The notes under the pieces: generated by a model
What the model was told of the DNA's origin: nothing
The model's database searches: none
The model's input: only the letters and a program-made list of their open reading frames with translations
Program-made: the position numbers and the translations under genes
Assembly: GCA_002104905.1 (NCBI GenBank)
Contig: MCFE01000474.1
Coordinates: 4,906-68,905, forward strand
DNA from: Basidiobolus meristosporus CBS 931.73
Lineage: Eukaryota > Fungi > Basidiobolomycota
Length of the DNA stretch: 64,000 nt
Reading direction: 5' to 3'
Shown here: one piece after another, positions 7,080 to 64,000 of the stretch
Layout: every line of letters starts with the position of its first letter
How positions within the stretch are numbered: the first letter of the stretch is position 1

Positions 7080-10000
7080 ACCATGATGGGATAATCCACA
7101 ATCTCTACCTGGGATGAGCTTGTGTCAGAAATTTAGGATGCTTTTGAGTCTCCACACCAGCAGACACTACTAAGAAGGAAGTTAAAGACACTCAGACAGA
7201 AAGGAATGGTTCAAGAATACATCTATGAGTAAAGATGTCTACTTGGACAAATTGAAAGAATGGACCCCCTGGATCAAGTTGAATACCTTATTGATGGGTT
7301 GAAAGAAAGAACTCACAAGGAAGTGAATTATCAAAGACCTCAGACTATTGAAGAAGCCATCAAGATTGCCATTGATCATCACTCATCTATGTTTGGAGCT
7401 GGGAAGCCTGCAGTGACTAATCAGAAAGGCTACAATCATTACGAAAGAAGACAGTCAGAAGCAGTACCAATGGAAATAGATGCTAGGCAGAAGAACCCCA
7501 CCTCAGAAGAATGAAGGAAGAAAGGACTTTGTTTCAATTGCCACCAGCAAGGACACATCTCAAAGTACTGCCCCCAGAGAAGAAATGGACACCAGCCAGC
7601 AAGAACCTTCAACCATATTGAGTCCCATGAACACAGTAATGTGGAAGATGAGCTTGAAGAAGACTTAGAACTCACCTTCCATGTGACAGAAGGGTACTTG
7701 TCCCAAATGACCTCAAACTCAGGGAAGTTATTGTACCTAAATGCAGTAATCTATGGAGTACCTGCCAAAATCATGATTGACTCAGGAGCATCACATGAAT
7801 ACATGTCAGACAATTTGCCTTGAAAGCTGGAACCAACTTGGAAATTACCAAATCAAATTCAGTCTCCACAGCTGATGGGAACTCTCACATAATCAACCAT
7901 ATCACCCAGTCAATAAGAATGAAGATCAATGCCTATGAAGAGAACCTACAGGCTTATATATTTGGGAGCTGCAAGTTTGACCTTGTACTTTGAAAAAACC
8001 TGGCTATTTTGTTGTAATCCATCAATCAACCGGAGAACCCATGCTACTCAGATCCAAAAGGACAACAATACCTATGAGCTATTGCCTGCTAGACTGGATT
8101 TCAACTTGGTTAATTCCAGTATGTGTGAGACAAGTGAACTTAGCAAGAGCCAGTTCTGTTGAGCACTTAGAAAAGGTACCCAGATGTTCCTCATGGCGGT
8201 ATTACAGGAGGATTCCTCTACCCCAGCACCCCAGCAGGTCCAGACTCTCATGAAGAAATATTCAGACGTGTTTCCAGATGAGCTTGTAAGCCTACCACCA
8301 GTCAGAGATGTGGAACATGTCATTGACACAAGTGATAGCCCTCCAGTGAGCAAGACACCTTACAGAACGAGTCCATTGGAATTGGAGGAAATGAAGAGAC
8401 AAATTGATCAGCTATTGGAGCAAGGATACATCAGACCCAGCAAGTCACCTTGGGGAGCACCAGTGCTTTTTGCAAAAAAGAAGGATGGAACACTTAGGAG
8501 GTGCATTGACTACAGAGCCCTGAACTCAGTTACCGTCAAGAATAAATACCCCATACCTTGGATTGATGAGCTTTTGGACCAACTTAATGGAGCCACCATA
8601 TTCAGCAAGATTGACTTCATGTCAGGATACAACCAGATTAGGGTGAAACCAGAAGATATCCCTACAACAGCATTCAGGACCAGATATGGACATTACAAGT
8701 ACTTAGTCATGAGTTTTGGCCTTACCAATGCCCCTGCAACATTCATGACCCTGATGCAGACTGTCTACCAGGAGTACTTAGACAAGTTTGTGATAATCTA
8801 CCTAGATGACATATTGATATACAGCAAGACAGAAGAGGATCACTTAGTACACATTGAAAAGGTCTTGAAGAAGCTAAGAGAGAACAAGCTATATGGAAAG
8901 CTAGCCAAGTATGATTTCTTCAAGGAACATGTTGAATGTCTGGGACCCATAGTGACTAGCACAGGAGTGACCTTAGACCCTAAGAAGGTTGAAGTTACCA
9001 AGAATTTGAAGCAGCCCCATAGTATATCAAAACTCAGATCATTCCTTGGAATGGCATCCTATTATCAGAGATTTGTCAAGTTCTTTGCAAGCATTGCAGC
9101 CCCTTTAACTTATATCCGCAAGAAAGATAACACTTACAAGCAGGACATAGCCTGTGAGACTGCATTTCAGACACTCAAGAATCAACTTGCCAAGCTGCCA
9201 AGCTCAAGAATACCTGACTTCCAAAAAGAGTTTACCCTGTGCACAGATACTTCAGATTATGCAATTGGTGGAGTACTAAGCCAAGAACACAAGGGAAAGG
9301 ACTACCCAGTTGCCTTTGGGTCCAAGAAACTGAACTCAGCAGAACAAAACTATCCTGTGCATGAGAAGGAGATGCTTGCTATAATACGCTGTTTGAAGAC
9401 ATGGAGATGCTATATTGAAGGAGTCAAATGCCCTGTAAATACTGATCATGTCTCACTGAAGTATATATTTACTCAGAAGCTTCTATCCAGAAGAATGACA
9501 AGATGGAGTGAATACATTCAGCAATTTGACTTGGAGAATGTCTACTGCCCTGGGAAAAACAACATGGTTGGTGATACCTTATCAAGACTAAAACAAGTGG
9601 CAAAACTCAACTTGGTGCATGAATCAGATTGGCCTAGCTTATTGCCACAATACTTGGAGGACCAAGCCATTCCTAATGAGTTGGATGAAGAGATAAAGAA
9701 GATAATCCGGGATGAAGCCAGCAAATTTGTTGTACGGGATTAAACACTCTACCAAATTGTAGATGGAGGTCCTATTGCCTATTGCCCTTATGTTGCTTGC
9801 CTGGATATAATACATAAGCTGCACAATGGATATGGTCATCTTGGGATTGAAGGAACCTATAGCCTTGTGAAAGCCAGAGCTTAGTGGCCAAGAATGAAAC
9901 AAGATAATGAGAAGCTAGTGAAAACATGCCCAAGCTGCCAAATTAATCAAGGCCAGCTACAAAGAATTGCCAAACTGTTTCCTTTGGAGCCTGTAAGACC

Positions 10001-25780: not shown

Positions 25781-28176
25781 ATAGAACATGATAACTCTCC
25801 TCTCTTACTGCTGTTATAGATCTAACTGATGTCTGCATCAAGGCCACCAAAATACTCTCAAGTTCAATATCTGTATGCAAGGCAACAGCAGAGGGTTCAG
25901 TTTTGGTTTTGACAATTCTGGATGGAGGATCACTTAAAATGCTCAAATGAAGAAACACCAATGCTTTGACACAGAACATGTGGGCACATCACTTTTGATC
26001 ATTTGCTTAAAATGATCAAAGATTAGCTAATTTCCAGAGTAAAAATTGATACCCAAGCAAATTTGGAGCACTGTCAAGCCTGCATATATGGGAATTAACT
26101 CATGCAACTATTTAAGAGGTCTTTATTAATCAAAACCCACTGGATCTAATTCACTGAGATCTGTGTTGACCAATGCAAAATATATCCTTAAGCTGGATGA
26201 AGTAGTTCATCATTTTTATTGATGTTTATACATGATATATGTGGGTCTACTTCATGGAATGAAAGAATAAGCTCCATCTAAGTTTAGGGACTTTAAAGCC
26301 TGGTGGAGAGAGAAACTGGTGAAAAAATCAAGGAAATACGCTCCAACAATGGTGAAATAGATACCTGAAAACTCTTCATCCACTTGTGTGAGATTCATGT
26401 GATTATATATTAGATTACTGTACAATACTCTCCACAGCAAGATGGGTATCAGATCATAGAAGCAGATCAATCACCAATATAGCAATATAAACAATCCATA
26501 ATCAAAAAATATCTTGAGATATTTTGGTGGAATCAGTTGCTACAGCTTTTGATCTCAGAAGTAGGAGTTCCAGCAGTATACTTTGTGATTCTACTCCATT
26601 TGAGGCATAGTATGGATACAGACCAAGTGCAGAACATATAAGAGTATTTAAGTGCCCTGCTTTTGCCAAGAAACTGTCTGGGAATCAGTCAAAACTTATG
26701 CCAAGAGTGTAAAATACATATTTTTGGCCTACTGCCATGAAAGTAAGAATTATGGGCTTTGAAGTACTAAAGTAGAGAACTTCAGCAAGTTCAGGTATGT
26801 GCCACTTGATGAAAACTCAAAATTCTCATAATATATGACATCAATTGATGCCAAAACTCAGATCTCCGGCCCACTAAGAGTGAGGATTGAATCAAAGTAG
26901 AGTAATGAAAGCTTACTTACTTCAGCAGACTCTACAGGCCTAGTTCACTGTGATTCAGTGCCCAGGAATATCCCAGAAGTGATTATTCCAGTATTACAAG
27001 CCAGGAGATCCAATTGGACTAGAAATAACCCAAATTACAATATTCTATGGGTACAAACTTAGCCTATGTCTATTAAGTCCATATTGATCAGCCCTAGACA
27101 GTTAAAGAGACCCTAAATAGCCTGCAGACAGTATTTTAGAGATTTGCAATGACTGAGGAGTATATGGCCCCAATGGAATATCAAACTTAGGACTTAGCCA
27201 AATTACCTATCAACCAAAAGTTAATTGAATGCAGATGGGTCTTCAAGACAAAATTCAAGGCTGATGGTACAATTGAAAGATCTAAAGTAAGACTTGTGGC
27301 CAAAGAGTACTCCCAAACAAAAGGACTGGACCATACTGAATTCTTTGCACCAGTTACCAAGTTCAATTCCATCAGACCAAAATTGGCTATTGCAGCCAAT
27401 TATAAGTTTTTATTCATCAAATGGATGCAATATTGCACTTTTGAATAGGGAACTTGTTGAGGACATGTACATCAGCCAGTCTGATGAGTTGGCTGACCAA
27501 GATAACCCCCATTTGGTCTGCAAGCTCAAATAATCCTTAAATGATCAGAAACTATCACTAAGAGCCTGGATTCACAAGATATGTGCTTACTGGGACCCTT
27601 TGAGTTTCCAAAGAAGTATTGCTGACTAAGGTATCTACTAAAAGCCATATAGAGCAAATGCAGCTCTATTAGCACTATATGTATATGATCTTATTACAGC
27701 CACCAATAACCAAAAAACATTGCAATAGACTAGATCCAGCCTATCTAAGGAGCTAAAGGTATTCAATCTTGAGGAACTGTAACTACTTTGGGATAAAGCC
27801 CCCTTTAGACATAAGTACTCAGAATACTGCCCTGAGCCAGTCCTAGTGTGTACAAGATATATTCAAGTGCTGTAAGAGTCTTGGAGATATTGGAAATGAT
27901 TGGGAGAACTAGTACATTATGTGGTTTTCACTTAATGATTTATTGAATGTAAAAGTAGTATTTATACTTTTACATGGTCTTGGCATTACAAACACGTAAA
28001 ATAGGCTAAGGAAGGTCCCAAGAACATGTGTGCAAAGTTTGGGGCTGTTTGGACAACTTTGAAAATTTTCATGTTCTGGGTACCTGGTATTTTGGTGAAA
28101 ATATTCCAAGTAAATCCTGACAAGGAATTTGGTCGGTATTCTCTAGGATTTGAGGGTAATGATCTAAGTGACTAAG

Positions 28177-30651
28177 TTAGGTGAATATTAAGGTGGAAAT
28201 ACAAATTTTTACAACACTCCCACTCAGCAAAATGTTCACACTGACTAGTCCTAATTTTGACCTAAGATATTCAAACTTGTCTCTAGCTAATGGTTTGGTA
28301 AATATGTCTGCAATCATTTCATCTGTAGGACAGTAAACTAAGCTAACTAAGTTTTTCTCTATAGCTTCACATATGAAATGATGTCTAATATCTATGTGCT
28401 TGGTTCTAGCATGAAAAGTTGGATCTCTACCTAATTGTATATATCCTTGATTATCTTGAAAAAAAGTAATGGGCATATTTTGACATAGGCCTAAATCTGT
28501 AAAAAGCTTTCTTAACCACATTGCTTCTTTTTTAGCTTCACAGGCTGCCATATACTCTGCCTCTGTGGTGGAAAGTGCTACGGTTGGTTGCTTTCTTGAA
28601 TTCCATGAAATTGCTCCTTTACAGTAAAGAAAGGTGTATCCTGAGGTGGATCTTCTGTCTTCTAAATTTTGTCCCCAATCAGCTTCAGAGTATCCCACAA
28701 AATCCTGTTCTGAATCCTTACAAGTGTATCTTAAGCAGATATCAGCAGTTCCTTTTAGGTATCTAAAAATCCGCTTAACTGCTGCAATATGATCAGATCC
28801 ATAGTTCTGATTATGTAGGCTGACAACTCCCACTGAATATGAGATATCTAGACGTGTTCCAACCATGGTATACATCAGACTGCCAACCATTGACTGATAA
28901 GGAAAGTCAGGGCTTTCAGATGGCACCAAGCTCTCTTGATTTGGTTGAGTTTTGACCAAGTTAAGGTTTGTCTCCATTGGGGTAGCTGCTGGTTTACAGT
29001 CTTCCATTTTGTACTTCTTTAGTATATCTTGAATATACTTGGATTGGCTTAGGGTAATAGTCTGGGTACTTCTGTCTATGGAGAACTTAATCCCTAAGTA
29101 GTAACTAAGTTCTCCTAGATTGGACATCTTGAACTCCTTAGATAGGCTGGATTTAGTCTCTTCCAATGTTGCTAGGTTATTGGTGGCTATAATAAGATCA
29201 TCCACATATAGAGCTAATAGAACTGAATTTGCTCTATCTGGCTTATAGTATACACTATAGTCAGCATTACTTCTTTTGAAACTCAAAGATTCCAAATAAG
29301 AATCTATCTTGCAATTCCAGGCTCTTGGTGATTGTTTGAGACCATATCATGACTTTTTAAGCTTGCAGACCAAATGGGGGTTATCTTGGTCAACAAGCCC
29401 ATCAGGCTGGTCCATATACACGTCCTCATCAAGTTCTCCATTCAAAAATTCAGTTTTTACATCCATTTGATGAATAAAAAACTTATATTTGGCTGCAATA
29501 GCCAATATTCATCTTATGGAATTAAACTTGGCTACCGGTGCAAAGGTCTCAGTATAGTCAAGTCCTTTTGTTTGAGAGTATCCTTTGGCTACAAGTCTTG
29601 CTTTGTATCTTTCAATTGTATCATCAGCCTTGTATTTTGTCTTGAAGACCCATCTGCATCCAATTGATTTTTGGTTGATTGGTAATTTGACTAAGTCCCA
29701 AGTTTGATTTTCCATCAGGGCCTGATATTCCTCAGTCATTACAGATCTCCAAAACTTTGTCTGAGGGCTATTTAGGGCCTCTTTTACAGTCTGGGGCTCA
29801 TCAATATGGACTGAATAGGCATAGGCTAAGTTTGTATCCTCATTGATATAGTAATTTGGGCTATTTCTTGTCTGATTGGATCTCCAGGCATTTGATACTG
29901 GAATGATCACTTCTGGGATATTCCTGGGCACTGATTCTGGCTGAACCACGGTTGTAGAGTCCTATGGAGTGAAAAAATTTTCATTGTTTTGCTCTGATTC
30001 AATCCTGACAATTGGTGGACTTGAGATCAAATTTTTGTCATCATCTGATGTCATTTTTTGTGAAAACTTTGAATTTTCATCAAACAACACATCCCTGGAC
30101 TTGATCAGCTTCTTTGCTTTGGTATTGTAGAGTCTGTATGCCTTACTCTCACTGCAGTAGCCCAAAAATATGCATTTTACACTTCTTAGCTCAAATTTCA
30201 ACTGATTTCCGGCCAGTTTTTTAGCATATGCTGTACACCCAAATATTCTTAGATGTTCTGCACTTGGTCTGTATCCATACCATGCTTCAAATGGAGTAGA
30301 ATCACAAAGTATTCTGTTATAACTCCTATTTTTAAGGTATACAGCAGTGGCAACTGATTCTGCCCAAAAATCATACAATAATTTTTGATCATGATTCATG
30401 GATTGTGCCATAAACTCCCTGAACTTAGACAGAGCTTCTTCCTTTTTCTCCATGAAGTAGACCCATGTGTATCTTGTATAATCATCAATAAAAGTGATTA
30501 AATACTTCATCCCGCCTAAGGATAAATTTAGCATAGGTCCACGCAGATCTGAGTGAATTAGATCTAATTTTTTCTTAGTTTTGATTAACCCAGAGCTCTT
30601 GAATGGTTGTCTGGCTTGTTTCCCATATATGCAGGCTTCACAGTGCTCCAA
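28177..30651 (-). pseudogene. Copia integrase, RT and RNase H (frameshifted, integrase core deleted)
   Basis: LIHSDLRGP, FIDDYTRYTW, WVFKTK, ARLVAKGY, LYVDDLII, SSTEAEY-like LSTTEAEY, KHIDIRHH, ADIFTKPL. Confidence 0.9.
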
Positions 30652-31987: not shown

Positions 31988-34517
31988 TGCAGAGAGTGAC
32001 AGCTTGGGGCTCATAACCTGTTGTAAGAGTCTTGGAGATATTGGAAGTGATTGGGAGAACAAGTATATTATGTGGTTTTCACTTAATGATTTATTGAATG
32101 TAAAAGTAGTATTTATACTTTTACATGGTCTTGGCATTACAAACACGTAGAATAGGCTAAGGAAGGTCCCAAGAGCATGTGTGTAAAGTTTGGGGCTGTT
32201 TGGACAACTTTGAGAATTTTCATGTTCTGGGTACCTGGTATTTTGGTGAAAATATTCCAAGTAAATCCCAACAAGGAATTTGGTCAGTATTCTCTATGAT
32301 TTGAAGGTGATGATCTAAGTGACCAAGTTAGGTGAATATTTAGGTGCAAATACAAATTTTTACAACATCAAAAAGTACCAAATGGAAGACTGTAAGCTGG
32401 CAGCTACCACAAAGGCAACAAACCTTGATTTGGTCAAAACTCAACCAAATCAAGAGTGCTTGATGCTATCTGAAAGCCCTGACTTTTCATATCAGTTAAT
32501 GGTTGGCAATCAGATGTATATTATACTTGGAACATGTCCAGATATCTTATATCCAGTGGGAGTTGTCAGCCAATATAATAAGAACAGGATCTTGTGGGAT
32601 ACTCTGATATGGATTGGGGACAAAATTTATAGGACTGAAACTCCACAACAGGAAACACCTTTTGTTATGGTGAAGGGACAATTTCATTGAGTTGAGGAAA
32701 GCAACCAACTGTGACACTTTCCACCACAGAAGTAGAGTGTATGGCAGCCTCTGAAGCCACAAAAGAAGCAATTTGGTTAAGAAAGCTTTTTAATATCTTA
32801 GGTTGGTGTCAAAAAATGCCTGTTACTTTATTTCAAAAGTATTAAGGGTGTATACTACTCCATCTAAATATTCACCTAGCTTAGTCACTTAGATCATTAC
32901 CTACAGCACTTAGAGCATGCTGAGCAAGTCCCTTGTTGGGATTTGCTCAGAATGTATTCACCAAAACATCAGGTACCCACAAGATGAGAATTAGATAAGT
33001 TGTCCAAACAGCCCCAAGCTTTACACACATGCTCTTGGGACCTTCCCAGACATACTCAACAAGTTTTTTATGCCAAGACCATGTAAAGTAGAAATGCTAC
33101 TTTTACATTCAATAAATCATTGGGTGAAAACCGCATCATCCACTTGTTCTCCCAGTCACTTCCAATATCTCCAAGACTCTTACAACAGATGACACTATTA
33201 AGTAGACCCCAACAAGGAATCTGATTAGAGTTACCTAAGATCTGTAGGTAATAATCAAAGTGACTAAGTTAGGTGCATATATATGTGCAATTACAAACTT
33301 TAAAATACTTACTACCCTACCCTGGTTGCAGTGCTATCCCTATGAAATATGCCAAAGCTGTAATTCATTAGATTTTTAGCTGGTATTTAGCTGATTTTCT
33401 GATGGTGTTTTGCTGGTATTCAGCTAGTGTTTCTGCTTCAAATGTCAATAGTAATTTTGGGTAGAAGTAATGAGCAGCTGATTACCAAGTTTGGTATGAT
33501 TCCTAGTTGGCCTTGCCTCCCCCTGGAATGGATGTCTGCTGCAATGCTAGTACCTGGAATATTGAGAGTTTTCACTTTTGGGAAAGTTGAAATTCAGCTG
33601 ATATTCTGATGGTATCCTGTTGGCCTTTTCTCAATTTTTTTTTCTTAGGGGATAGTAGAGCCTACTAAGAATGCACTGACTCCATTATAAGACATGGGCC
33701 AGTCACAACCAGAAAATATTCCAACAAAACCCAAATAGGGGACTGGGCAGACAGTACAAGGGTCTAGAAGGGATGATCTTGGTTTCCAGATCAACATTGA
33801 GGCTTACATGCGCTTACAAAAGTTACAACAATTGCAAAAGAAATTCATGTTTGGAATTCCCGCATTTCCAAAGTTGTACTGCTGATTGTAATGGATGGGG
33901 GAGCTGGTAAGAAACTGGACCATTGCACTCGTTCGCCTTGGCCCCTGATCACGCTCCTCCTAGACATCCAGTACGTTGGTAGCTGGTTCCAGTGGTTACG
34001 CCCAAGTAGTGACCACGTTGTCATTGGAGTGAGTGGCTGGCATCCATCCGTGCCCACGTGGTACATTCTCAACAAAAGCCAAGTGGTGTGGCCGTAGCCC
34101 TCTGTCCTCCATCGCTATATCCCCCACAATTACATCCGAAACGCACCATCTGCCTAGTTGCATGGACGATACAACGAAGAGCCTGTCCGTAATTCTGTAG
34201 TGTCTCTTGTCCCCTCTCTGTTGAACCGGGCCCCTCGGCGATTTTCGTCAGTCAATGCATCCCACCGGCCTTAAATGCCGATGCCGGATTGAATTACGCA
34301 TTCGATCTGGCATGACGTTGGAAGGCTGCCTTCTTCTGGCCACGTGATCCACCAATCAGGGGCGTGAACACCGAAATCACGGGCATAGGGCTAGGGTTAG
34401 GCTGAAATTGATTTAGGTCACGCAATAGGGAGGGGGGTGGAGACCGGATCCGACCGTGATATATATATATATATACGATCCATCGAGATCCTGTGTGGAC
34501 GATTTCTCACTTTCATT

Positions 34518-51632: not shown

Positions 51633-54600
51633 GTTGGCAGTCGGTGGCAACCTACATGTACGGGCTTCTGATCACCGTCTTTATAAGTCTGGAGAATTAT
51701 AGTATATACATTAGGTTTTAGCGCAAGGTGTCAAGGAGCCTCGCCGTCACGTTAAACATAGTTTAGTGATATCAATCTCTTCTACATCAACGATATACTT
51801 GTTGCCTTATTGGGTCAGTGTTTACTGATGCGCATGGTTGCATGGAGATTGATTTCCATGGACATTTCGTGATCAAAAATAGAGCATTTAGTGAATGCCG
51901 CAAGGGCATTGTGGCATTGTCAGTCATTACACTAGATGAGTGGATGAAGTGGAAGCATGATAAATGGGAGGTTGAGCGAGGGAATTTGCCACTAAGGCTG
52001 TCTTAGTCACTTAAATGAATCCTCGTTGATAGTCTTTCCATTTATCAAACTCAGGATCATACGGTTGATGCTGACAAGGGATGAGTGGTTCGACACTTCC
52101 AATATATTGAATTCTGGTTAGGCTCGGGGTTCAGGTTTATTTAGGTCTAGATACGCATATAAGGGTGGGTGGGGTGTCGCTGGGAAGTTATAATAATTGC
52201 GTTCCTTCAGAGACACTTGCATGCTGGACATGAGTGTGTGTACAGTGGGATGAAGTGTGTTCTCTGCCTGGGATTGTATGCTGTGCACGGTCTATGCTTG
52301 GGATGATAGACTGCGTGTGCTCGCTGCTCCGCTATATCATTCCATCATGTCGATTACCATCACTCGATCCCCATGTGTGCATTTTACCGAGTAGATATTC
52401 ATGCAATGTTACGAGAATTGACGTTAACTGATCAGTCCTCGATCTGGATACATGATTTGTTTGTTTCTTAGATTTCAGAGCGAACGGATTGGCAACACTT
52501 GCCGCACTGTAGCTCCCAAACATTCATCCGATGCATCAGAAATCTCGAGGAGTCCCACTTGGCAACTTCGATTATATCATTCTACTTGCACCGTTTGGTG
52601 TCGTGTCTTTCGGGGCCTCTGATCCTGGAAAAGATGAACCATGGTCCCTGCACAAGGATGTCATGGAAAGTGTGGGTGGATATCATTTGAATGTGACCAC
52701 CACTTCCCTCCATTGGGCCTTCTGATGCAAACTTGTTCCCTTCATTGGCGCTAATATTTTTGTTAGGCACTGGTTTCAAAATCATCTAGATTGGTTTGGC
52801 ACCCGAGCCAAATAGATGAAGTCAATTAGTCGTTGATTTCCACCATCCAACCTCTGTTCAGTGGGTAGTTAAGCATCTGGATAACCTAACTGATGATAAT
52901 AATCAAGCGGGATATGTCATGCTACCTGGGAAATCTTATTCGCGCCCTGTTGTTAGCCAGCACAGACCCATATCGAACAACATGCTGAAGTATATTCCGA
53001 TTACATATGAACGCCACCGATAGATCCATAAACGCCGACTAATACATGGGAGAATTCAATCTCGCTTTTGTAACATATTGCGTTGATGAAGTTCGTGATT
53101 CAAGCAATCCATGGTGGATGATCATTGTTGGCGCTGGCGAGTTGCATCCCGTTCTCCGTTACCTTGGCGCTCTCTGGTTCTATACTGCAGAAATAAATAC
53201 CGCCAGAATCCTCAAAGGACAACATCCGTAGAATATTTTCAAAGGAACCACAGTTACGTAGGTGGTTTTTGTTCACACAAACGAGGTAGTCAAGGTAATA
53301 TATATGAGAGGGGCATTGATCCCAGAAATCAGCTGAATCCCTCTCGCTCGGACTACCAGCATGACAAAGCGATACAATCAACAATGCTCATTCTCGCTTG
53401 AGCCATCAACGCGATGTAAGTGTGACCTGTCCCAAATACATTGCTGGTTATAGAGAGCACCTGGCGTGGATGTATACTGCGAGCGGTATAGATGTCTCTA
53501 GCGAGTTCCATGCATGTGTTTTTATCAGCAGTAGCCTAGGATGATCATCTTTTTATCTTTAGCTAACCGTCAGTCGTCCTAGCATCAAGCCTCCACTTGT
53601 CAAAACTAATGGCCATGCCCGACTTGCGAACATATCTGATAGTTGCCTGACTTGGGTCTGATAGTCATATCTTGCTCAAGCAATCCTTGGCGAATTGTTT
53701 GGACCATTAGGGCTGGCCCGGTGAAACTTCCTCATGGAGGAGGCCACTGCCAGTTTGCCATTTCGTGGGATAATATGTGAAGCCATCTACAGCAATTTTC
53801 TCATAGTATGGTTCTAAACCAGTAGTCAAATACATCAAATTTTCCTCTTTGTCAGTTTGAGACTTGAAATAGTAGTGGAAGACGAAGGCCAAACATTGCT
53901 TAGCTGCAATATTGTCAATATGATCAGCTTCCATTCATAAATCAGAAATGGCTTGATGGCTAAGCCATGATGGATCACTGGATTTAACACGGCATCTGAT
54001 GACAAGGATTATCACACTACACATCGTGTACTTTGACCATCTCAGACTGCCTTTTCAAAATGTACATCCGTGTGTAGAGTTTGGCTTTTGAATGTGTTTG
54101 TGCTGTATATACTGTTTTGGCCCCATGTCTCTCTTACACCTGACTTAGTGGCCAGTGCTACAGTATGCAGATTTGTGAAGAGCATAATACAGTCAAGTCT
54201 AATTGAATATTGACCAATAGCTATCGCTCACAATGGCTATGGTGTGATTGGTAGCGTGGATAGCAGGTTTGATATGTATTCTATTGGCACCCAGTTAATA
54301 TGAATTATCATACTATTTTCATGACCTTCTACAGCCCACTTTTATAAGTATCGTGGTGAAGTCGCATATAAGATATTGATACTTCTCTTTTACTCAATAT
54401 GGGAAACCCCACTGATTCCTAATGAATGCCCAAGTTCCAGTTCCGCGACTAACACTAATATGCGGGAAGTGAGTATCATGACAACATTCAACCATTCCAG
54501 ATGACTGATTTGGCAGTTCTTGGATCGCGGAAAAAGTGCAGATACAAAAATTTTAAAATCATTCATGAGCCTCTAACCCTGAACATATTTTTCCATGACT

Positions 54601-55179
54601 ATGAACAACCCACTATTAAATTGGCTTTATGAGAATCTACAAGCTCATTTTGCATCGGTCTGCTCGTTGAGTGATAGCGATGGTTGCATGGACTGCAACA
54701 TAGCATGGTAAGCTATATGGTTACTGCGAATTGCTTCCGGGGCGCTGTATATTTATCGAAGTAATATCAATATAAAACAAGTGCACCAAAATATCTGTCT
54801 CAATTTAAATCAGCTCTACAACGGTCTTCATCAATCGATTCCTCATGGCCCTATTTATGTCACTACCCACACGTCCCCTTAGTAACATGCACAATCGCAG
54901 CGTGTCCTATTTTTGGTCGAAACAATATACAAAGATTTTCAACCTTAAATCCATTATTGTTGTGATGATGGTGTCGTACAAACAAATGTTGATCCAACAC
55001 CGAACTGCACATGCACAGCATCATTCTTGTGTGCATGTTACCAGCGATCACAGGCAATACCACTTACAACATAACTCCATGCATCATCAATGCGAACGGC
55101 GAATCCCATTGTACGATGTTTGATTAATTTCATGCAGTTTATCAAAATTGCAGCAAAAATATAAAATCATCATCCAGAG

Positions 55180-55673
55180 TTAATCAAAGTAGGCCATCAG
55201 CTCAATCACCATATCTATCTCGGCCTGATCATGGCAGCTCCAGCTGGAATTCACAATGGCCAATACGGGGTCAATTCCACAATGCATGTCCTGGAATAGG
55301 CCGCTGTCGCCACAGATCTCTCCCAGGAGATCGCCTTCTTCGCAGTCCATCACCTCCCACTCCGAGATGAGGGCGTTCAGTGAGTCGAAGAGCGCATCCT
55401 GTGCACAGCTCAACTCTACAATGAGAAACAGAAACATTAGCAACCATTCGCAACTACAGGGGAGAATGGGTCGGTCCTACCATCAATCATGTGGAGAAGA
55501 TTCTCCTCCTTCTTACCGGCTGTCAGAATCAAGATACGCTGGTAGTCATCTCCATGAATAGCCCCGTAGAAGCTAGTGTTCATCCTTGACGAAGCACTGA
55601 TCAAATTGGATACTTTTCTGATCAGACGCAAGCTGACAGTGGAGCGACGCTTAGTAGTACGAATGAAGTGCAT
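55180..55673 (-). CDS. Orphan two-exon gene, copy L (~142 aa, unknown function)
   Basis: Mirror of copy R. Ends ...MAYFD-TAA. Confidence 0.7.
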
Positions 55674-56564
55674 GGTTGTTGATGCTGTCCCAGTCACCAA
55701 GCAGAGGATATTTATGGCACTTTGACAGCAACCGCTTAGCCGTTGAAAAAAGGTTTGTGATAGCATCGTACACTGGCATTATTATGCCTGAGGGTCAAAA
55801 GCGCAGCAGAGTCACTATGAAATCAGGAGATAAGCAGTCACCTGGTCAGGTAAGGGGTGAATTTTTAGATACAATAGCGCTACCTAATTATTAGTTGCGG
55901 ATCCTGGAGTTGGTGCTCAACTCAGCATCAAACAAGTGTTCTTGGACGTTTTACAGTAGTGACAACGGAGTCAGATTGAGCTCAAGTTAATGTCCTCATA
56001 CACATACGAGATACTGTATACGAAACTATACAGCTTGGTGTCTTTTCAGTATACCTTTCACGCTTTCTGTTTTAAATGGTCACCAGTTGAAGAAACCATC
56101 TTAGCGAGAGAGCTATATGGGGATGCTTTATAAAAACAGCCTGAAGCCTTTTAGTTATCTAGAGTCTTTTGAGCATCAGCGGAGAGCACAAACGTAATAC
56201 TGGACAAGTACGAACATAGAGCCTCGCTCAAAGTATCTGATAATCATAATATCAAGTATTCTGGGCTTTTTACCTTGAAATACACCAAATTATTGGTAGC
56301 TACTGGATCACTTGATACAAGCTGGTCGTATAACAATGGATTCCAGATAACAATAGAAGTGAGCTGTATCTAAGCTTTTGCCTCTTGTTCAACCAAGTGA
56401 CTGCTTATCTCCTGATTTCATAGTGACTCTGCTGCGCTTTTGACCCTCAGGCATAATAATGCCAGTGTACGATGCTATCACAAACCTTTTTTCAACGGCT
56501 AAGCGGTTGCTGTCAAAGTGCCATAAATATCCTCTGCTTGGTGACTGGGACAGCATCAACAACC

Positions 56565-57058
56565 ATGCACTTCATTCGTACTACTAAGCGTCGCTCCACT
56601 GTCAGCTTGCGTCTGATCAGAAAAGTATCCAATTTGATCAGTGCTTCGTCAAGGATGAACACTAGCTTCTACGGGGCTATTCATGGAGATGACTACCAGC
56701 GTATCTTGATTCTGACAGCCGGTAAGAAGGAGGAGAATCTTCTCCACATGATTGATGGTAGGACCGACCCATTCTCCCCTGTAGTTGCGAATGGTTGCTA
56801 ATGTTTCTGTTTCTCATTGTAGAGTTGAGCTGTGCACAGGATGCGCTCTTCGACTCACTGAACGCCCTCATCTCGGAGTGGGAGGTGATGGACTGCGAAG
56901 AAGGCGATCTCCTGGGAGAGATCTGTGGCAACAACGGCCTATTACAGGACATACATTGTGGAATTGACCCCGTATTGGCCATTGTGAATTCCAGCTGGAG
57001 CTGCCATGATCAGGCTGAGATAGATATGGTGATTGAGCTGATGGCCAACTTTGACTGA
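56565..57058 (+). CDS. Orphan two-exon gene, copy R (~142 aa, unknown function)
   Basis: TATA-like CATAAATA at 56522, ATG in AACCATG, 65-nt phase-1 intron 56758-56822 (GTAGGA, branch GCTAAT, polypyrimidine tract, TAG) joining both ORFs in frame. Alternative in-frame donor GTAAGA at 56722. Confidence 0.7.
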
Positions 57059-57344
57059 ATCTGTAGTTATGAATTTTTGAAACTTTTGACCCTGTACACT
57101 TGTCAATAAATCCGCTCCTTGCTAACAAAGGTAAAATCAAGATGTTTGTCTGCTAATCATCTCAACATGCTTGTAACATGATGTAGGCAGTTGGTGAATT
57201 TGGTTCATTATGCTTATTGCAATGAAAGATGACAATTGGAATGCAACTGGTCCAAAATGATTCTTTCCAGAGTATAAGCATATTCTTAACATAAAGCTCT
57301 CCAAGTGATATTAGTAGACTGAGAAACAGAATCAGTTAGCAACT

Positions 57345-58440
57345 AAATCCCAACAAGGAATCTGGTCAGAGATCTCAAAGTTTGTAAGGAAATGATTCAA
57401 GTGACTAAGTTAGGTTAATTCCTAGGTGCAATTATGAGCTTTTTACAACACTCCCACTCATCTAAATACTCATATTAACTAGTCCCAACTGTGATCTGAG
57501 ATATTTAAACTTGTCTTTAGTTAATGGTCTGGTAGATATGTCTGCAATTGTTTAATCTCTGGGAGAGTAAACTAAATTAACTGAGCTCTTCTATATAGCT
57601 TCCCATATGAGATGATATCAGATATCTGTGTGCTGTGCTCTAACATGAAAAGCTAGATTTCTACTTAATTGCATATTCCCTTGATTGTCTAGATTTAATC
57701 TAATAGAATCTTTTTAATATACTCCTAAATCTTCCAAGGGTTTCTTAAATATAATGAACTCTTTTGGTCAAACAGGCTGCCATATATTCTGCCTCTGTGG
57801 TGAAAAGTCCTACAGTGGGTTGCATTCTGGAATTCAATGAAATTGTCCCTTTAGAGTAGAGAATGGTGCATGTTATGGTGGATCATCTGTCTTCTAAGTT
57901 TTTCCCCAAGCATCATAAGAGTACTCCAAAAGATCTTGCTCTGAGTTCCTATTGGTGTACTGTAAGCAGAAACAAGCCTTTATTTTCTAATATCTCATAA
58001 CTCATTTAACTGCTGCAATATGTGCATATCAATATTACTGATGAAGCTGGTTAATAGCTCCCACTGAATATATGATGCCTAGAAATGTTCCTTACTTGAT
58101 ATATATTAAGCTGCTAGTCATAGACTGGTAACTGAAGCTTGGGCTCTTGGATGGCATCAAGTCTTTGTCATTTGGTTGAGTCCTGACCAAGTTAAGGTGC
58201 TTCTCCATTGGCATAGCTGCTTCTTTGCAGTCTTCCATTTGGTTTCCTTAAGTATATCTTGAGTTTTAGATTGCACACTTTAAATTACCTGGATAGGCTG
58301 GATTTAGTCTCTTCCAATGTTTTTGGGTTATTAATGGCTACAATAATAGAATCCAAGTACTGAGAAAATAGCACTGGATTTGCTCTATTGACATATAGTA
58401 AATACTAAAGTGAACAATACTTCTGTGGAAACTTTGAGCA
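57345..58440 (-). mobile_element. Decayed Copia RT/RNase H, PPT and partial LTR (family of 27868-32367)
   Basis: Colinear with 28110-29290. Confidence 0.85.
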
Positions 58441-59145
58441 TCTAGGGAGGCAGCTAAATTGCAATATCAGACTCTCTGTGTCATGTCCACATGACATTCA
58501 TAACCTTTCATTACCTGGTCAAATCAAATTGGTGAAGAAATCCCAGTTCCTTATAGAAAGTTCTAGTACATTCTTAAAACTTCTTGAATACTCCAAGTCA
58601 ACACTACACAATGAGATATTTTATGGAAGCCTCCCTCTGGAATTTGTGTAGCTCAGTACTATATATGATAATTGCATGTCACATGACCTAGTCACATGAT
58701 CACCCAACTGTTTGCATATCCCCATGTGATTTTCTAGTCTGTTCTTTAGTATATTTCTATCTCAGCACACTGACTGTGCTTCATCCCAGAACCCTATCAG
58801 TATTAACCAATAACTCTTGGCATCCATATTGCCAAAAAGTATATATAGCTCTATCCCCCCTTGTGTACTCCTCAGTCTGATAAACACAGGTCTTGAATAA
58901 ACAGCCTTGCCTTCAAATCTGTCTAGCCTTGTTGATCCAAACCTAAGTCCTTTCCTGGTTCTGGGTTGCCTAGCCCTACTCCCCTCCCTTGTGTCTATTC
59001 CTAACAGGATCAGATCTGGAGAGTTGTGATTAATTACATCACCGCCATTCTTGACTACTCAAAATATTTTTTTCAATTTGGAAATATTAAAATCAAGTGT
59101 GATGTGTCCACAGCTGTTGCAAATAAACACAAAATGGTTTATTAT

Positions 59146-59493
59146 TGTTGAAAAGACTTGTAATTCCACCTAAATATTAACCTATTTAGTCACTTAGATC
59201 TCTACCTTCAAATCATAGAGAATACTGACCAAATTCCTTGTTTGGATTTACTTGGAATATTTTCACCAAAATATCAGATACCCAGAACATGGGAATTCTC
59301 AAAGTTGTCCAAACAGCCCCAAACTTTGCACATATGTTCTTGAAATCTTCCTTAACCTATTCTACATGTTTGCTATGCCAAGACCATATAAAAGTATACA
59401 TACTACTTTTACATTCAATAAATCATTAAGTGAAAACCACATAATCTACTTGTTCTCCCAATCACATCCAGTATCTCCAAAACTCTTACAATA
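59146..59493 (+). repeat. Solo Copia LTR
   Basis: Reverse complement of the 349-bp LTR. TSD ATTAT/ATCAT. Confidence 0.88.
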
Positions 59494-61665
59494 ATCATCT
59501 GGTAAAACTTTTTGGCAAAAATATTTTTTCAAGTCTGGAGATTGCTAAAGTCAAATTATGGGTGCTTATAGTTGTTGCCATTAAAATCAACCTAATATGG
59601 TTTGTTATCTGGAAAACTTTTTTGGTTCAAGAAATATTTTTTCAAGTCTGAAAACTATCTTAAGCTAAGCCAGGATGTTTTATATATTTCAAGTATGCAA
59701 ACAAAATAAAGAAATAAAAAGTGGCAGCAAAGTCAACAAAAAATATTATCAATTGTTATGATAAAAGGTGAGAGTTTTGGTGCCATAGTGTTAAATAAGA
59801 AATGTATGTACAAATTACGCAATTTCTATACATAAAAATGTGCGCAAAAAATGCAACAATATCAAATTGCCATTTTTGGCATGGTGCACCCTACAGCCAA
59901 AATATTTTATCATGAAGTTTCTTCAGGGTTTTGTTTATCTCATACAATATGTCCTAAGCGTCTCCCACAATAAAGAAATTGTATCATCTTTAATTAGCAA
60001 AATTACACTATTTGATGAATTATACATTTCTCCAAGTACTATTCCAGCAGTAGTTAGACAATTTCTCGTTGGAGATGTAGTTGGAGTTGCAGTCAGGGTT
60101 GTAGTTGAAGGTGTGGTATAAGCAGGTAGTTTAGCAGAATACATATGCCTTTCCATTAGTACATCCTTGGGAGAATAAAGTGGCCAATAGTCTATATCTT
60201 CAGGAATTGGTTCAGTGACTATTTTGTATGTCCCATGTATATTTTCTGCAGCTGTTTAGTCAGCAGTATACAAAGTTTCTTCTGCAAGTTGCAAATTAGC
60301 TGTTTCTACAGTAGGTGTGCAAGTGTCTAATAGTGCCTTACCCAATGTAGAATTTTGAGCAACAGAAATATTTTTTCCTGAGTTTAGTTCTTGAAGTGGT
60401 GAACTAAGCTTTTGAAGTCTGAGTTTATGAGGAAAGGCAAGAGGTTTGCCCAGAGTTGGTTTGTCAGATGAAGTTATAGAGTTTGTGCTATTATCCAACA
60501 AATCAACTTTATTTACAGTATTGTTGATTTCAAATATTGTTTCAATGCCATCTTATGACTTATCAACTTTATGTACAGGTTTTGGTTTGTCATATAAAGA
60601 AAAAAATTTCTTTGGCAGAAGCTTACTCAAGAGATGTATATAAGATTGCAAATTACTTGATAAAGCTATGCCAGAGTGCAAGATATTATTACAGGAATTG
60701 TCTGAAGTATGATACAGCCACATCTAGATTCTTTATTTCTGCCATTTTTTATTATAGCAAGACAGAAAAAATCCTCAAGATCTTGCTTGTAATCAACTTT
60801 GAAATTGTCCATTATAGCTGCAGCAGTTATGAGAGTACCAGATACGTATTGGTCAAATTACTGAGCAATGTCAAACCCAAGTCAATATAAGAATTAACAA
60901 ATTCAGGTTCCATAGTTGGTTAACTTGTAAGTCAATTGGTTGGGTGAAGTTGTGATAAGAGAATTATAGCATGAAAAAAGAGAGACTAATAGTACAAACA
61001 AGAAAACAAAGACTTATGTCTGTTAGGGTGGCACATCAAGGGTCAGTCATTAAATAAAAGATTCTTTTGTAAAAATTTTATTGTCAAACATTTTTTTATC
61101 CCAAAAATTTTTTTGTTTGATGTAACTGCATTGGATTGATATTTTAAATGTTTGTTTGATCTTAATCCAAACTTGTTATCTCAAACCTTTTTGCATCTTG
61201 AGAGTATTTTTGGTTTGAACTAAAAATTTTTTTAAGATACTGTATATATTTATTATATCTTGGTTCAAACTTGTCATCTCAAGACTTTTCACATCTTGGA
61301 AATACTTTTGGTTAGAACTAAAAGAATTTACAAAACTTTTTATGTGTTGAAAATAATTTTTGTTAAAACCAAAAGTTTGTCATCTGGAAAAAGCTTTGCT
61401 CAAACTAGTTTAAAAGTTTATTGTCTGCAAAGAGTTTTGGCCCAGCTCAAAAGTTGTCATTTGCAGTAAAATTTGGCCTGATGCAAAAGTTGTTGTGTGA
61501 AAAAAGTTTGGCCTGACCCAAAAGTTATTTGAAACTTTTTGTCCAAAAATAAAATATTATCATCTTGATGAACATTTTGTTCTTAAAAATAAGAATAGTC
61601 ATCTGAAAAACTTATGTATAATTTGATTATTATCATCACACGCAAATTTTGAAGTAGTCTATAGT

Positions 61666-62320
61666 TGTTGTAAGAGTCTCGGGGATATTAGAAGTGATTG
61701 GGAGGACAAGTAGATTATGTAGTTTTAACTTAATGATTTATTGAATGTAAAAGTAATATTCATACTTTTACATGGTCTTGGCATAACAAACAGATAGAAT
61801 AGGTTAAGAAAGGTCCCAAGAACATGTGTACAAAGTTTGGGCTATTTGGACAACTTTGAGAATTTTCATGTTCTGGGTACCTGGTATTTTGGTGAAGATA
61901 TTTTAAGTAAATCCCAACAAGGAATTTGGTCAGTATTCCCTAGGATACAAAGGTATAATTTAAGTGACTAGGCTAGGTGAATGTTTAAATGGAACTACAA
62001 ATTTTTACAACATTCCCACTCAGCTAAATGTTAATATTGACTAGTCCTAATTTTGACCTAAGATATTCAAACTTGTCTCTAGCTAATAGTTTGGTAAGTA
62101 TGTCTGCAATCATTTCATATGTAGGACAGTAAACTAAGCTAACTAAGTTATTCTCTATAGCTTTACATATGAAATGATGTCTAATATCTTTGTGCTTAGT
62201 TCTAGCATGAAAAGTTGGATTTATACCTGATTGAATACATCCTTGATTATCTTGAAATAAAGTAATAGGCTTTTTTGACAAAGGCCTAAATCTGTAAAAA
62301 GCTTTCTTTGCCACATTGCT
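61666..62320 (-). mobile_element. Copia 3' LTR (61666-62012) plus RNase H fragment
   Basis: LTR colinear with 27868-28216. TFHARTKHKDIRHHF...ADILTKLL. Confidence 0.9.
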
Positions 62321-63769
62321 TTGGTTGTCAGGGGGGGAGACAGTCACCAACAGGTGAAATCTTTATTTCAATTGAAACAAAGAAGCCAGCACCACTGTTG
62401 TAGCTTTGATACAAGTGTGTGTAGCCAAGGGGAATTTGTAGGTAAGTTAATAAGAAGTGATGATAGCTCTTCAGTGCTCAAGACACTGTTCAGTGGGAAG
62501 GGGGGTAGCAAGAGAGGTAGAATGACTTGTGAACAACATTAATGAGGGGAATGAGATAAGGATTGATATTCATCATAAAGGGAGTGTGCTGCTGCAGATA
62601 TTGTTGCCAAAGGTCTGTCTAGTACTTCAGGTAGGCCAGCTTGGGTTTTTCTGACTGCAGAATGTAGTGAGCAAACTTCTTGACTTCAGGATCTCCAAGT
62701 ATAGTTCTCCAGCAGGAGCCAGGTGTAGTGTGGTGTTGTTGTGCATCAACATTTAAAACTTAGCCAATTTTACTCCGTTTGAAAATCTAGTACCCTAACT
62801 GATTTTCCCTAACCCAAACATAACAACTCCCAGTTACAGTTTATTTTATCCCACCTCAGAATCTATTTTTAGCAATCACACCTGATCTATTTTCAAATGG
62901 TCATTACGTTATCAACCTATCTGCCAAGCCTTCCCAGGTGATTAGTCATCTGTGATCTATCCAACCATGGTGCAGTTGCCAAGACATCAGTTGATTGATG
63001 ATGTAATTTTCATTTATATTATGCACCTATGAACACCCAAATTGATTTCAATCAATCCAGTCCCTTGGCGCTTACTAATTCAACTTGATCAGAAAAGTAT
63101 AAATAAAGTTTACTGAAACTTTTGGTTTAGTGTGTGTCTCAACAAAATTAAGATTCTGTCTCAGCAAAAATAAGAATCCAACAATTCCGTTCCAGTTTCT
63201 ATCCAAGCCTAGTATATCTAGCACTCCAAAGAACACCAAGCCTAGCCTGCCTAGCAAACAAATATCATTGCCTTTATAGCCAACCCAGCTATATCCAAGA
63301 CCAATATTAGATCAGAATCTTTCTGCTAATATTTCCGCCACTCTCTGACAATTCTAAGATTCTGCACTTAATTGTCCCTTTGGTTCAGTTAAACCATTCA
63401 AGAGTTTTATTACACTTTCACTTGGATACAACAGGTGTGTTCTCTTCCAGGCCATAATCAGTGGGTTGTTGCAGTGGTGAAGTCTGAGATATAATCTGGT
63501 TCTGAGGTAGAGAAGTCTGATCTTATAGGACATAAACCCAAAAGCACCAAGAATAGCATGTCTGTAGGGGCATTCAGGCAAATGAGGCACCAAGGAGGTA
63601 ATGCACCATACTGCAAACTTGTCAAGCTTAGTGCAGTCTCTAGAAGTAAGAGAGAGAAGTGGTAAGCTAAATTCCAGGACAGGGAAGACAAACTGCTTGA
63701 GTAGAAGGAGGCAGCTGGGAGCTGAAGTTGTAGGAGGAGTAACAGCCAGTAGCTTGTGGAGTGCCTTTC

Positions 63770-64000
63770 TTAGGGTTAGGGTTAGGGTTAGGGTTAGGGT
63801 TAGGGTTAGGGTTAGGGTTAGGGTTAGGGTTAGGGTTAGGGTTAGGGTTAGGGTTAGGGTTAGGGTTAGGGTTAGGGTTAGGTTAGGGTTAGGGTTAGGG
63901 TTAGGGTTAGGGTTAGGGTTAGGGTTAGGGTTAGGGTTAGGGTTAGGGTTAGGGTTAGGGTTAGGGTTAGGGTTAGGGTTAGGGTTAGGGTTAGGGTTAG
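63770..64000 (+). repeat. Telomeric (TTAGGG)n array
   Basis: About 38 units to the end of the window, G-rich strand running toward the end. One TTAGG variant at 63878-63882. Confidence 0.99.

Follow-up and report, generated by a model that had tools for sequence, protein, structure and literature searches.

The stretch between positions 55180 and 57058 of the window analysed here, which is a 64,000-nt segment of the Basidiobolus meristosporus CBS 931.73 genome (contig MCFE01000474.1, positions 4,906 to 68,905), contains two copies of a spliced gene in head-to-head orientation, and it very probably belongs to a small, dispersed family of gene palindromes that are ancient and have been homogenised by gene conversion. 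A preliminary description, made from the letters of the window, had proposed an old head-to-head duplication kept uniform by conversion; comparison with the other loci of the family bears this out, since the cores of the arms group by locus while the spacer and the 3' flanks group by arm type.

The palindrome is formed by two inverted arms of 699 nt each, identified by an inverted-repeat call and by alignment: the left one, here named A-type, lies at 55175-55873 on the minus strand, and the right one, B-type, at 56365-57063 on the plus strand. The arms are 97% complementary over a gap of 491 nt, and no mismatch between them is found in the innermost ~533 nt; the structure reported earlier, with ~670-bp arms of ~99% identity and a ~545-bp spacer, is real, with these revised measures. 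Each arm carries ~190 nt of upstream sequence that includes a TATA-like CCATAAATA box, a 193-nt first exon, a 65-nt intron and a 236-nt second exon. The spacer (55874-56364) is a unique, asymmetric region between the divergent genes, whose two sides are unrelated to each other (shuffle z 1.4).

In B. meristosporus the family includes at least seven genes at four loci, as found by a word search and a cluster look-up and counted as proteins in the genome annotation. Genes 300899 and 300900 form a second head-to-head palindrome (locus L001; arms of ~685 nt, 98-99% identical, spacer of 500 nt), and genes 359518 and 385165 a third one (L002; arms of ~662 nt, 98-99% identical, spacer of 245 nt). The remaining gene, 354074 (L003), is on a contig that begins 164 nt upstream of its ATG, where any partner would have been cut off. 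A search of the window and of the fetched loci for a further diverged copy found none.

Comparison of the three palindromes revealed concerted evolution of the arms. Within the window, L001 and L002 the arms are 97-99% identical, whereas between loci whole arms differ by 20-28%, with an identity of 72-83% for corresponding arm segments. The same contrast is found for the single segments: promoter, exons and intron are 96-100% identical at the same locus and 53-83% identical between loci, and for the intron alone these values are 98-100% and 53-71%. Synonymous divergence (dS) is 0.02-0.05 within a locus, corresponding to 2-4 synonymous differences in each pair, versus 0.55-0.9 between loci. Since the identity also covers neutral positions, namely the intron and the synonymous sites, selection alone cannot explain the likeness of the arms. 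In a maximum-likelihood tree of the arm cores the arms group by locus with 100/100 support, and a clade uniting all A arms is rejected by the approximately unbiased (AU) test (p = 2e-48).

Conversely, the sequences bordering the arms follow arm type. A tree built from the spacer and 3'-flank sequences joins the left window arm to the right arm of L001 and the right window arm to the left arm of L001 (98/99 and 89/96 support). By spacer side and 3' flank, the left window arm has its orthologues in the L001 right arm and in L003, and the right window arm in the L001 left arm. Flanks of the same type are 65-77% identical, versus 35-57% for cross-type pairs; against shuffled sequences, the spacer ends give z scores between loci of 38.7 on the A side and 42.0 on the B side, and 3' flanks of the same type z scores of 6-20. 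The whole window spacer, once reverse-complemented, is collinear with the L001 spacer over its full length, and in one orientation only. The A-type 3' flank (55116-55179, minus strand; extent from BLASTN), which is probably a 3' untranslated region (UTR) and is not repeated in the other arm, shows 73% identity in A-to-A comparison versus 35-57% A-to-B (z 19.7 and 10.5); the B-type 3' flank (57059-57113, plus strand) contains a conserved AATAAA-containing stretch and is orthologous to the flank of the L001 left arm (z 5.9). L002 is more diverged: the B side of its spacer has been lost and the A side is kept (z 5.6-9.5). It repeats the A/B split at five edge columns of the alignment, namely 287, 306 and 1014 (C in all B arms; T, T and A in A arms), 1016, which falls in the stop codon, and 1018. 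Indeed, the stop codon follows arm type at all three palindromes, being TAA or TAG on A arms and TGA on B arms.

The orthology of spacer, flanks and stop codons by arm type implies that the palindrome predates the separation of the loci. In the absence of any homogenising process, the arms of one locus should have diverged from each other no less than the loci have; as they are nevertheless nearly identical at each locus, repeated arm-to-arm gene conversion is the sole economical explanation, and the comparison indicates that it operated independently at the three loci. The orientation of the spacer relative to the flanks is the same at all three, and there is accordingly no sign of crossover-associated inversion. 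An invertible switch was also considered and rejected, because of this constant orientation and because each copy has its own promoter, so that a flip would change nothing obvious.

The limit of conversion can be recognised at the outer end of the arms. With the three palindromes summed, arm-to-arm differences amount to 0.7% in the interior versus 13% in the last 36 nt, stop codon included (Fisher p = 1e-11). At the inner boundary of the window arms identity does not end abruptly but decays over ~32 nt, which are ungapped and collinear with 20 matches in 32 (p = 3e-5); beyond the stop codons the arms are unrelated, their similarity being no better than that of shuffles (z = 0.1). Of the weak similarity previously described beyond both boundaries, only that on the inner side persists. 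The differences in the last codon and in the stop are ancient, arm-specific states that lie beyond the reach of conversion; the last codon is also the sole coding-region position where an A/B difference is common to the loci, and there the change is synonymous at the window, and any amino-acid change is inconsistent across loci.

Copy A (K493DRAFT_306038, 142 aa, stop TAA) occupies 55180-55673 on the minus strand, with exon 1 at 55673-55481, the intron at 55480-55416 and exon 2 at 55415-55180; copy B (K493DRAFT_306039, 142 aa, stop TGA) occupies 56565-57058 on the plus strand, with exon 1 at 56565-56757, the intron at 56758-56822 and exon 2 at 56823-57058. The two-exon structure with a 65-nt intron in each arm, and with exon 1 and intron identical between arms, had been read from the sequence and equals the deposited 142-aa proteins; for copy B, tblastn matches both exons, and the open reading frame (ORF) at 56472-56798, which holds exon 1, matched K493DRAFT_306039 at 100% identity in the protein word search. 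The intron is of GT..AG type and contains a CTAAT branch-like motif. From sequence reading, the CCATAAATA box of copy A is placed at 55709-55717 (minus strand), 36-44 nt upstream of the ATG, and that of copy B at 56521-56529 (plus strand); the motif is kept in all seven B. meristosporus units. Between loci, position, split codon and GT..AG borders of the phase-1 intron are conserved, while its length (59, 64 or 65 nt) and its sequence differ, and the 190-nt upstream region is conserved more than the intron. In Basidiobolus ranarum, a family gene (on L006) yields the expected 131 aa only after removal of a 65-nt GTAAGT..AG intron at the equivalent position. The ratio of non-synonymous to synonymous divergence (dN/dS), computed per exon and skipping the split codon, is 0.17-0.34 between loci. 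By these comparative data, the spliced gene is supported and its protein is under purifying selection.

An N-terminal extension from an in-frame ATG at 56472 was discarded, since this ATG is not conserved (it is ATA in L001) and the TATA-like box would fall inside the extension. The deposited model K493DRAFT_385165 (L002 8917-9532, 183 aa, labelled 'partial') has a 41-residue N-terminal extension that is read out of the promoter; to judge from the conserved TATA-like box and from the other six models, it has been over-extended, and its true product would be of 142 aa.

Eight differences separate the second exons of the two window copies, one more than the seven counted earlier: five are non-synonymous (D/N, S/N, F/L, M/I and Y/N, all as previously listed), two are synonymous, and the last is the TAA/TGA stop, also noted before. 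All in-gene differences are confined to the final 128 nt of exon 2. Polarisation against the other loci assigns four of them (D>N, S>N, F>L and M>I) to copy B as a derived cluster at 56930-56953 (plus strand), where within 24 nt all changes are to A (three G>A and one C>A). The sites are 56930, 56934, 56944 and 56953, which correspond to 55308, 55304, 55294 and 55285 in copy A. The cluster has the look of one mutation event affecting several nucleotides, perhaps during repair, instead of four separate hits. The Y at 55191 is derived on the left copy, and one difference cannot be polarised because the other loci disagree. Mutation of the arms of a repeat-induced point mutation (RIP)-like or CpG-targeted kind was rejected as a source, since a CpG site is involved in just one of the eight.

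The family seems to be restricted to the genus, and yet it is present in multiple copies within it. A family profile compared with 1.84 billion representative proteins retrieved just the family itself and one B. ranarum cluster, and the word search for relatives returned Basidiobolus proteins exclusively. Pfam searches with each exon and with five family proteins gave only AAA_5 noise up to E = 10, the profile had no match among the PDB sequences at E up to 10, and the ESM Atlas contained no usable match for K493DRAFT_306039 or for a second query (P0008). Rfam returned nothing at gathering scores on the window. In the literature, no paper naming the locus tags was retrieved, and Basidiobolus searches yielded nothing on 5-methylcytosine (5mC) or on palindromes. 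The gene had been called an orphan; this is appropriate in that no relatives were found outside the genus, but the family numbers at least seven genes here and at least ten in B. ranarum, where nine proteins at 36-42% identity were listed by the word search. The B. ranarum genes are not palindromic; they follow one another head-to-tail as tandem repeats that recur every ~1.1-1.6 kb, and the contigs that carry them are short (L004-L007 of GCA_040143965.1, 2.1-3.6 kb). These contigs suggest a larger array that the assembly left incomplete.

The family proteins are strongly dipolar. The first 30 residues have a net charge of +6 to +8 and contain 8-10 Ser/Thr, and no acidic residue occurs before position 32-42; the body that follows has a charge of -16 to -20. 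No signal peptide is present in the family proteins and their cysteines are not conserved. AlphaFold2 proposes four helices at low confidence. The basic N-terminal segment would resemble an organelle or nuclear targeting signal, and our best guess is an intracellular helical protein with a basic tail of targeting or nucleic-acid-binding type, which might be kept in multiple copies for dosage.

The history of the family was very probably as follows. An inverted duplication, comprising ~190 nt of promoter and the two-exon coding sequence and ending at the stop codon, generated two head-to-head genes that flank a unique spacer and differ in their 3' UTRs, A and B. DNA-level copying later spread the resulting ~2-kb unit to three or four genomic places at least, where the two arms repeatedly overwrote each other, presumably through intrachromosomal, non-crossover gene conversion between inverted repeats. 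The loci drifted apart, while promoter, exons, intron and synonymous sites stayed 98-100% identical within each of them; conversion tracts seldom reached the last ~36 nt of the arm, preserving there arm-specific states such as TAA versus TGA. Both copies may have been retained for dosage. An origin of the loci by whole-genome duplication or synteny was rejected, as they share no neighbouring genes and only transposon fragments.

The 97-99% identity of the arms could also be explained by their youth, if at each locus separately a single-copy paralogue had recently been duplicated in inverted orientation, and local duplication is indeed frequent in the family, as the tandem arrays of B. ranarum indicate. 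However, three independent events would have had to arrive at identical inner and outer end points and each would have had to reproduce both distinct spacer sides, both distinct 3' flanks and the TAA/TGA split, and the spacers of the window and L001 are orthologous from end to end; this origin is very unlikely. An assembly or fold-back artefact concealing a single real arm is an even more remote prospect: although one assembly (GCA_002104905.1) supplies the window and all the paralogous loci, which also weighs on the reading preferred here, the palindrome is internal to its contig, has an asymmetric 491-nt spacer and unlike outer flanks, and its arms differ at 8 sites; moreover, the architecture recurs at two other loci that are 20-28% diverged, with an arm-specific orthology not expected from an artefact. 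Other points count against an ancient palindrome homogenised by conversion, or against parts of it. The typing of the L002 arms depends on few sites and on the A-side spacer, and two flank scores that cross arm types (L1_B with L2_A, z 5-6) have no explanation; the support for the spliced gene comes from sequence comparison and the deposited models; the AlphaFold2 models are poor, with a pLDDT of 39 when 7 sequences were used and of 49 with 15. Finally, the tandem arrangement in B. ranarum indicates that the palindrome is not ancestral to the genus.

The occurrence of a ~2-kb unit at several unlinked places, beside transposon-rich DNA at three of the four loci, would also be compatible with a mobile element of fold-back or long terminal-inverted-repeat (TIR) type whose repeats happen to carry an ORF. 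This is highly improbable, since homology between loci extends beyond both arms by 55-100 nt, into the non-inverted flanks, so that the ends of the unit are not TIRs; the copies counted in the annotation are few, and copies are 20-28% diverged, purifying selection acts on the ORF, whose intron is conserved, and in B. ranarum the gene is found in plain tandem arrays. A match to a transposon protein, which the preliminary description had named as a finding that would speak against it, was looked for in Pfam, and neither a transposase nor any other family was recovered. Equally hard to credit is a functionally differentiated, co-expressed pair of variants (self/non-self, driver/antidote or effector), as had been suggested initially, with C-termini driven apart by selection. 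The five amino-acid versus two synonymous differences, all in the C-terminal half, and the vicinity of the telomere are in its favour; the resulting dN/dS of 0.65 on seven changes is uninformative, being indistinguishable from neutrality. Four of the changes form the single derived cluster at 56930-56953, located in a variable linker that is disordered in the structure models and corresponds to an 11-residue gap in the B. ranarum proteins, and two differences are ancient states at the edge of the tract. The L001 and L002 pairs differ by just 1 and 3 residues, at other positions of the protein, and no A-versus-B amino-acid difference recurs across loci; the absence of a signal peptide, the unconserved cysteines and the lack of Pfam matches to toxins or antitoxins also oppose it. 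Relaxed constraint and the time since the last conversion are enough to account for the cluster; the diversification first proposed for the C-terminal region is not supported, and nothing supports any of the three roles.

Small inverted gene pairs of this kind are known in other organisms. The Drosophila Hsp70Aa/Ab genes are a small head-to-head pair evolving in concert, with the promoter of each copy inside the repeat. As in that case, the Basidiobolus pair is homogenised by conversion, its copies have their own promoters and their number is plausibly kept for dosage; conversely, Hsp70 is a known inducible chaperone, while the Basidiobolus protein has no known family. A larger counterpart is provided by Y-chromosome palindromes, whose arms range from 9 kb to 1.45 Mb, compared with 0.7 kb here. 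They have in common with the present structure the inverted arms, the unique spacer, the intact genes and an identity far above that expected from age, which in both cases is demonstrated by comparing orthologous or paralogous palindromes; the differences are that the Basidiobolus palindromes are a thousand-fold smaller, that they are found on an ordinary fungal chromosome and not on a non-recombining sex chromosome, and that the outgroup consists of paralogous palindromes inside one genome. Gene-bearing palindromes with arm-to-arm gene conversion were described on the Y chromosomes of humans and apes (Rozen et al. 2003, as cited in PMC5490193). Adineta vaga and Folsomia candida, both asexual animals, also carry palindromic gene blocks, with several of them in a single genome (PMC5490193); in F. 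candida Ks varied widely, and the authors held that concerted evolution was not the explanation (PMC5490193), unlike what is demonstrated here for Basidiobolus.

Concerted evolution of inverted gene pairs is already well known, and these palindromes are a new example and not a new principle. Their value is in the clean demonstration they allow, with three paralogous copies of an ancient 2-kb palindrome homogenised independently, arm-specific flanks that prove the order of events and a measurable edge effect that marks the limit of conversion. The record is also corrected for seven 'hypothetical protein' models, and a Basidiobolus-restricted family is defined that is palindromic in one species and tandem in another. 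It is a rather doubtful, though conceivable, extension that B. meristosporus makes or retains small gene palindromes unusually often, that conversion is a genome-wide keeper of its duplicated genes and that the dipolar protein is a dosage-critical organellar or nuclear factor; the dispersed family would then represent a natural replicated experiment on the limits of conversion tracts. If gene palindromes are common in this genome, the family could serve as a marker set for conversion rates in an early-diverging fungus.

CpG content in the window is bimodal. In the transposon-rich regions (1-34 kb and 57.1-64 kb) the observed/expected ratio is 0.0-0.35, mostly not above 0.12, whereas in the gene island at 34-57 kb it is 0.65-0.96. 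At 0.56-0.59 the arms, like the spacer and the left flank, fall within the gene island, and the ratio drops to 0.02 where the right arm ends on its outer side. The L001 and L002 palindromes are also genic in this respect (0.54-0.67), and across loci the neighbouring genes have ratios of 0.6-0.95 and the transposons of 0.0-0.16; the B arm of L002 adjoins a CpG-poor transposon block. Transposon-rich blocks show raised TpG/CpA, and CpG content switches within a few hundred bases. This pattern suggests a long-term decay of 5mC type that would be limited to transposons. It had been observed that the arms, unlike other repeats, keep their CpGs, and this is correct; the special escape from repeat methylation deduced from it is not needed, because the level is an ordinary genic one, L001 and L002 are alike, and the contrast is between gene and transposon, not between repeated and unique sequence.

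The subtelomeric position reported for the window copy is correct: 38.7 copies of TTAGGG were detected at 63770-64000 (plus strand), at 6.7 kb from the palindrome, and K493DRAFT_306038 and K493DRAFT_306039 are the final annotated genes ahead of the telomere. The intervening stretch (57064-63769) is CpG-depleted (observed/expected 0.02-0.08) and transposon-derived, with self-BLAST matches to copia fragments and copies of a long terminal repeat (LTR). Subtelomeric location as a trait of the family is not supported: L002 adjoins housekeeping genes, its neighbours being those for RPL13, Tcf25 and cyclophilin, and each end of its contig is more than 18 kb away; telomere repeats are absent from the L001-L003 stretches examined, and the window copy is the only one shown to be subtelomeric. 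The L001 palindrome is ~8 kb from a transposon sequence that also adjoins the telomere of the window, where positions 62300-63783, directly under the telomere repeats, match L001 177-1322 at 84-95% in translated comparison; L001 may also be near a chromosome end, if the sequence under the telomere repeats of the window is a telomere-associated retroelement.

A telomere-like motif, AACCCTAACCCC (1.5 units of CCCTAA), is found in the A-side spacer of two palindromes out of three (L001 ~9755-9770 and L002 ~9785-9800), where it precedes the ATG of the A copy by ~250 nt, and is degenerate in the window (55890-55905); it may be due to chance or be a promoter element. According to the deposited annotation, the palindrome is separated from a propionyl-CoA carboxylase pair by an RPL37e gene, an RPL30/L7-type gene and a 76-aa homeodomain fragment (52692-53900, corresponding to L008 2787-3995, and ~54656-54883). 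By this annotation, housekeeping genes reach to less than 10 kb from the telomere. Two copies of a ~350-nt repeat, 95% identical and ~4.2 kb apart (27868-28216 and 32019-32367), bracket ORFs for copia-type gag, reverse transcriptase (RT) and pre-integrase, and are probably the LTRs of a copia-type element. Further copies were found in the window (59146-59494 and 61666-62013), in L002 (8322-8669) and in L003 (777-1083, 1344-1560 and 1593-1936); at three loci solo copies are found 0.1-2 kb from the palindromes, which probably reflects merely the density of transposons at the borders between genes and transposons.

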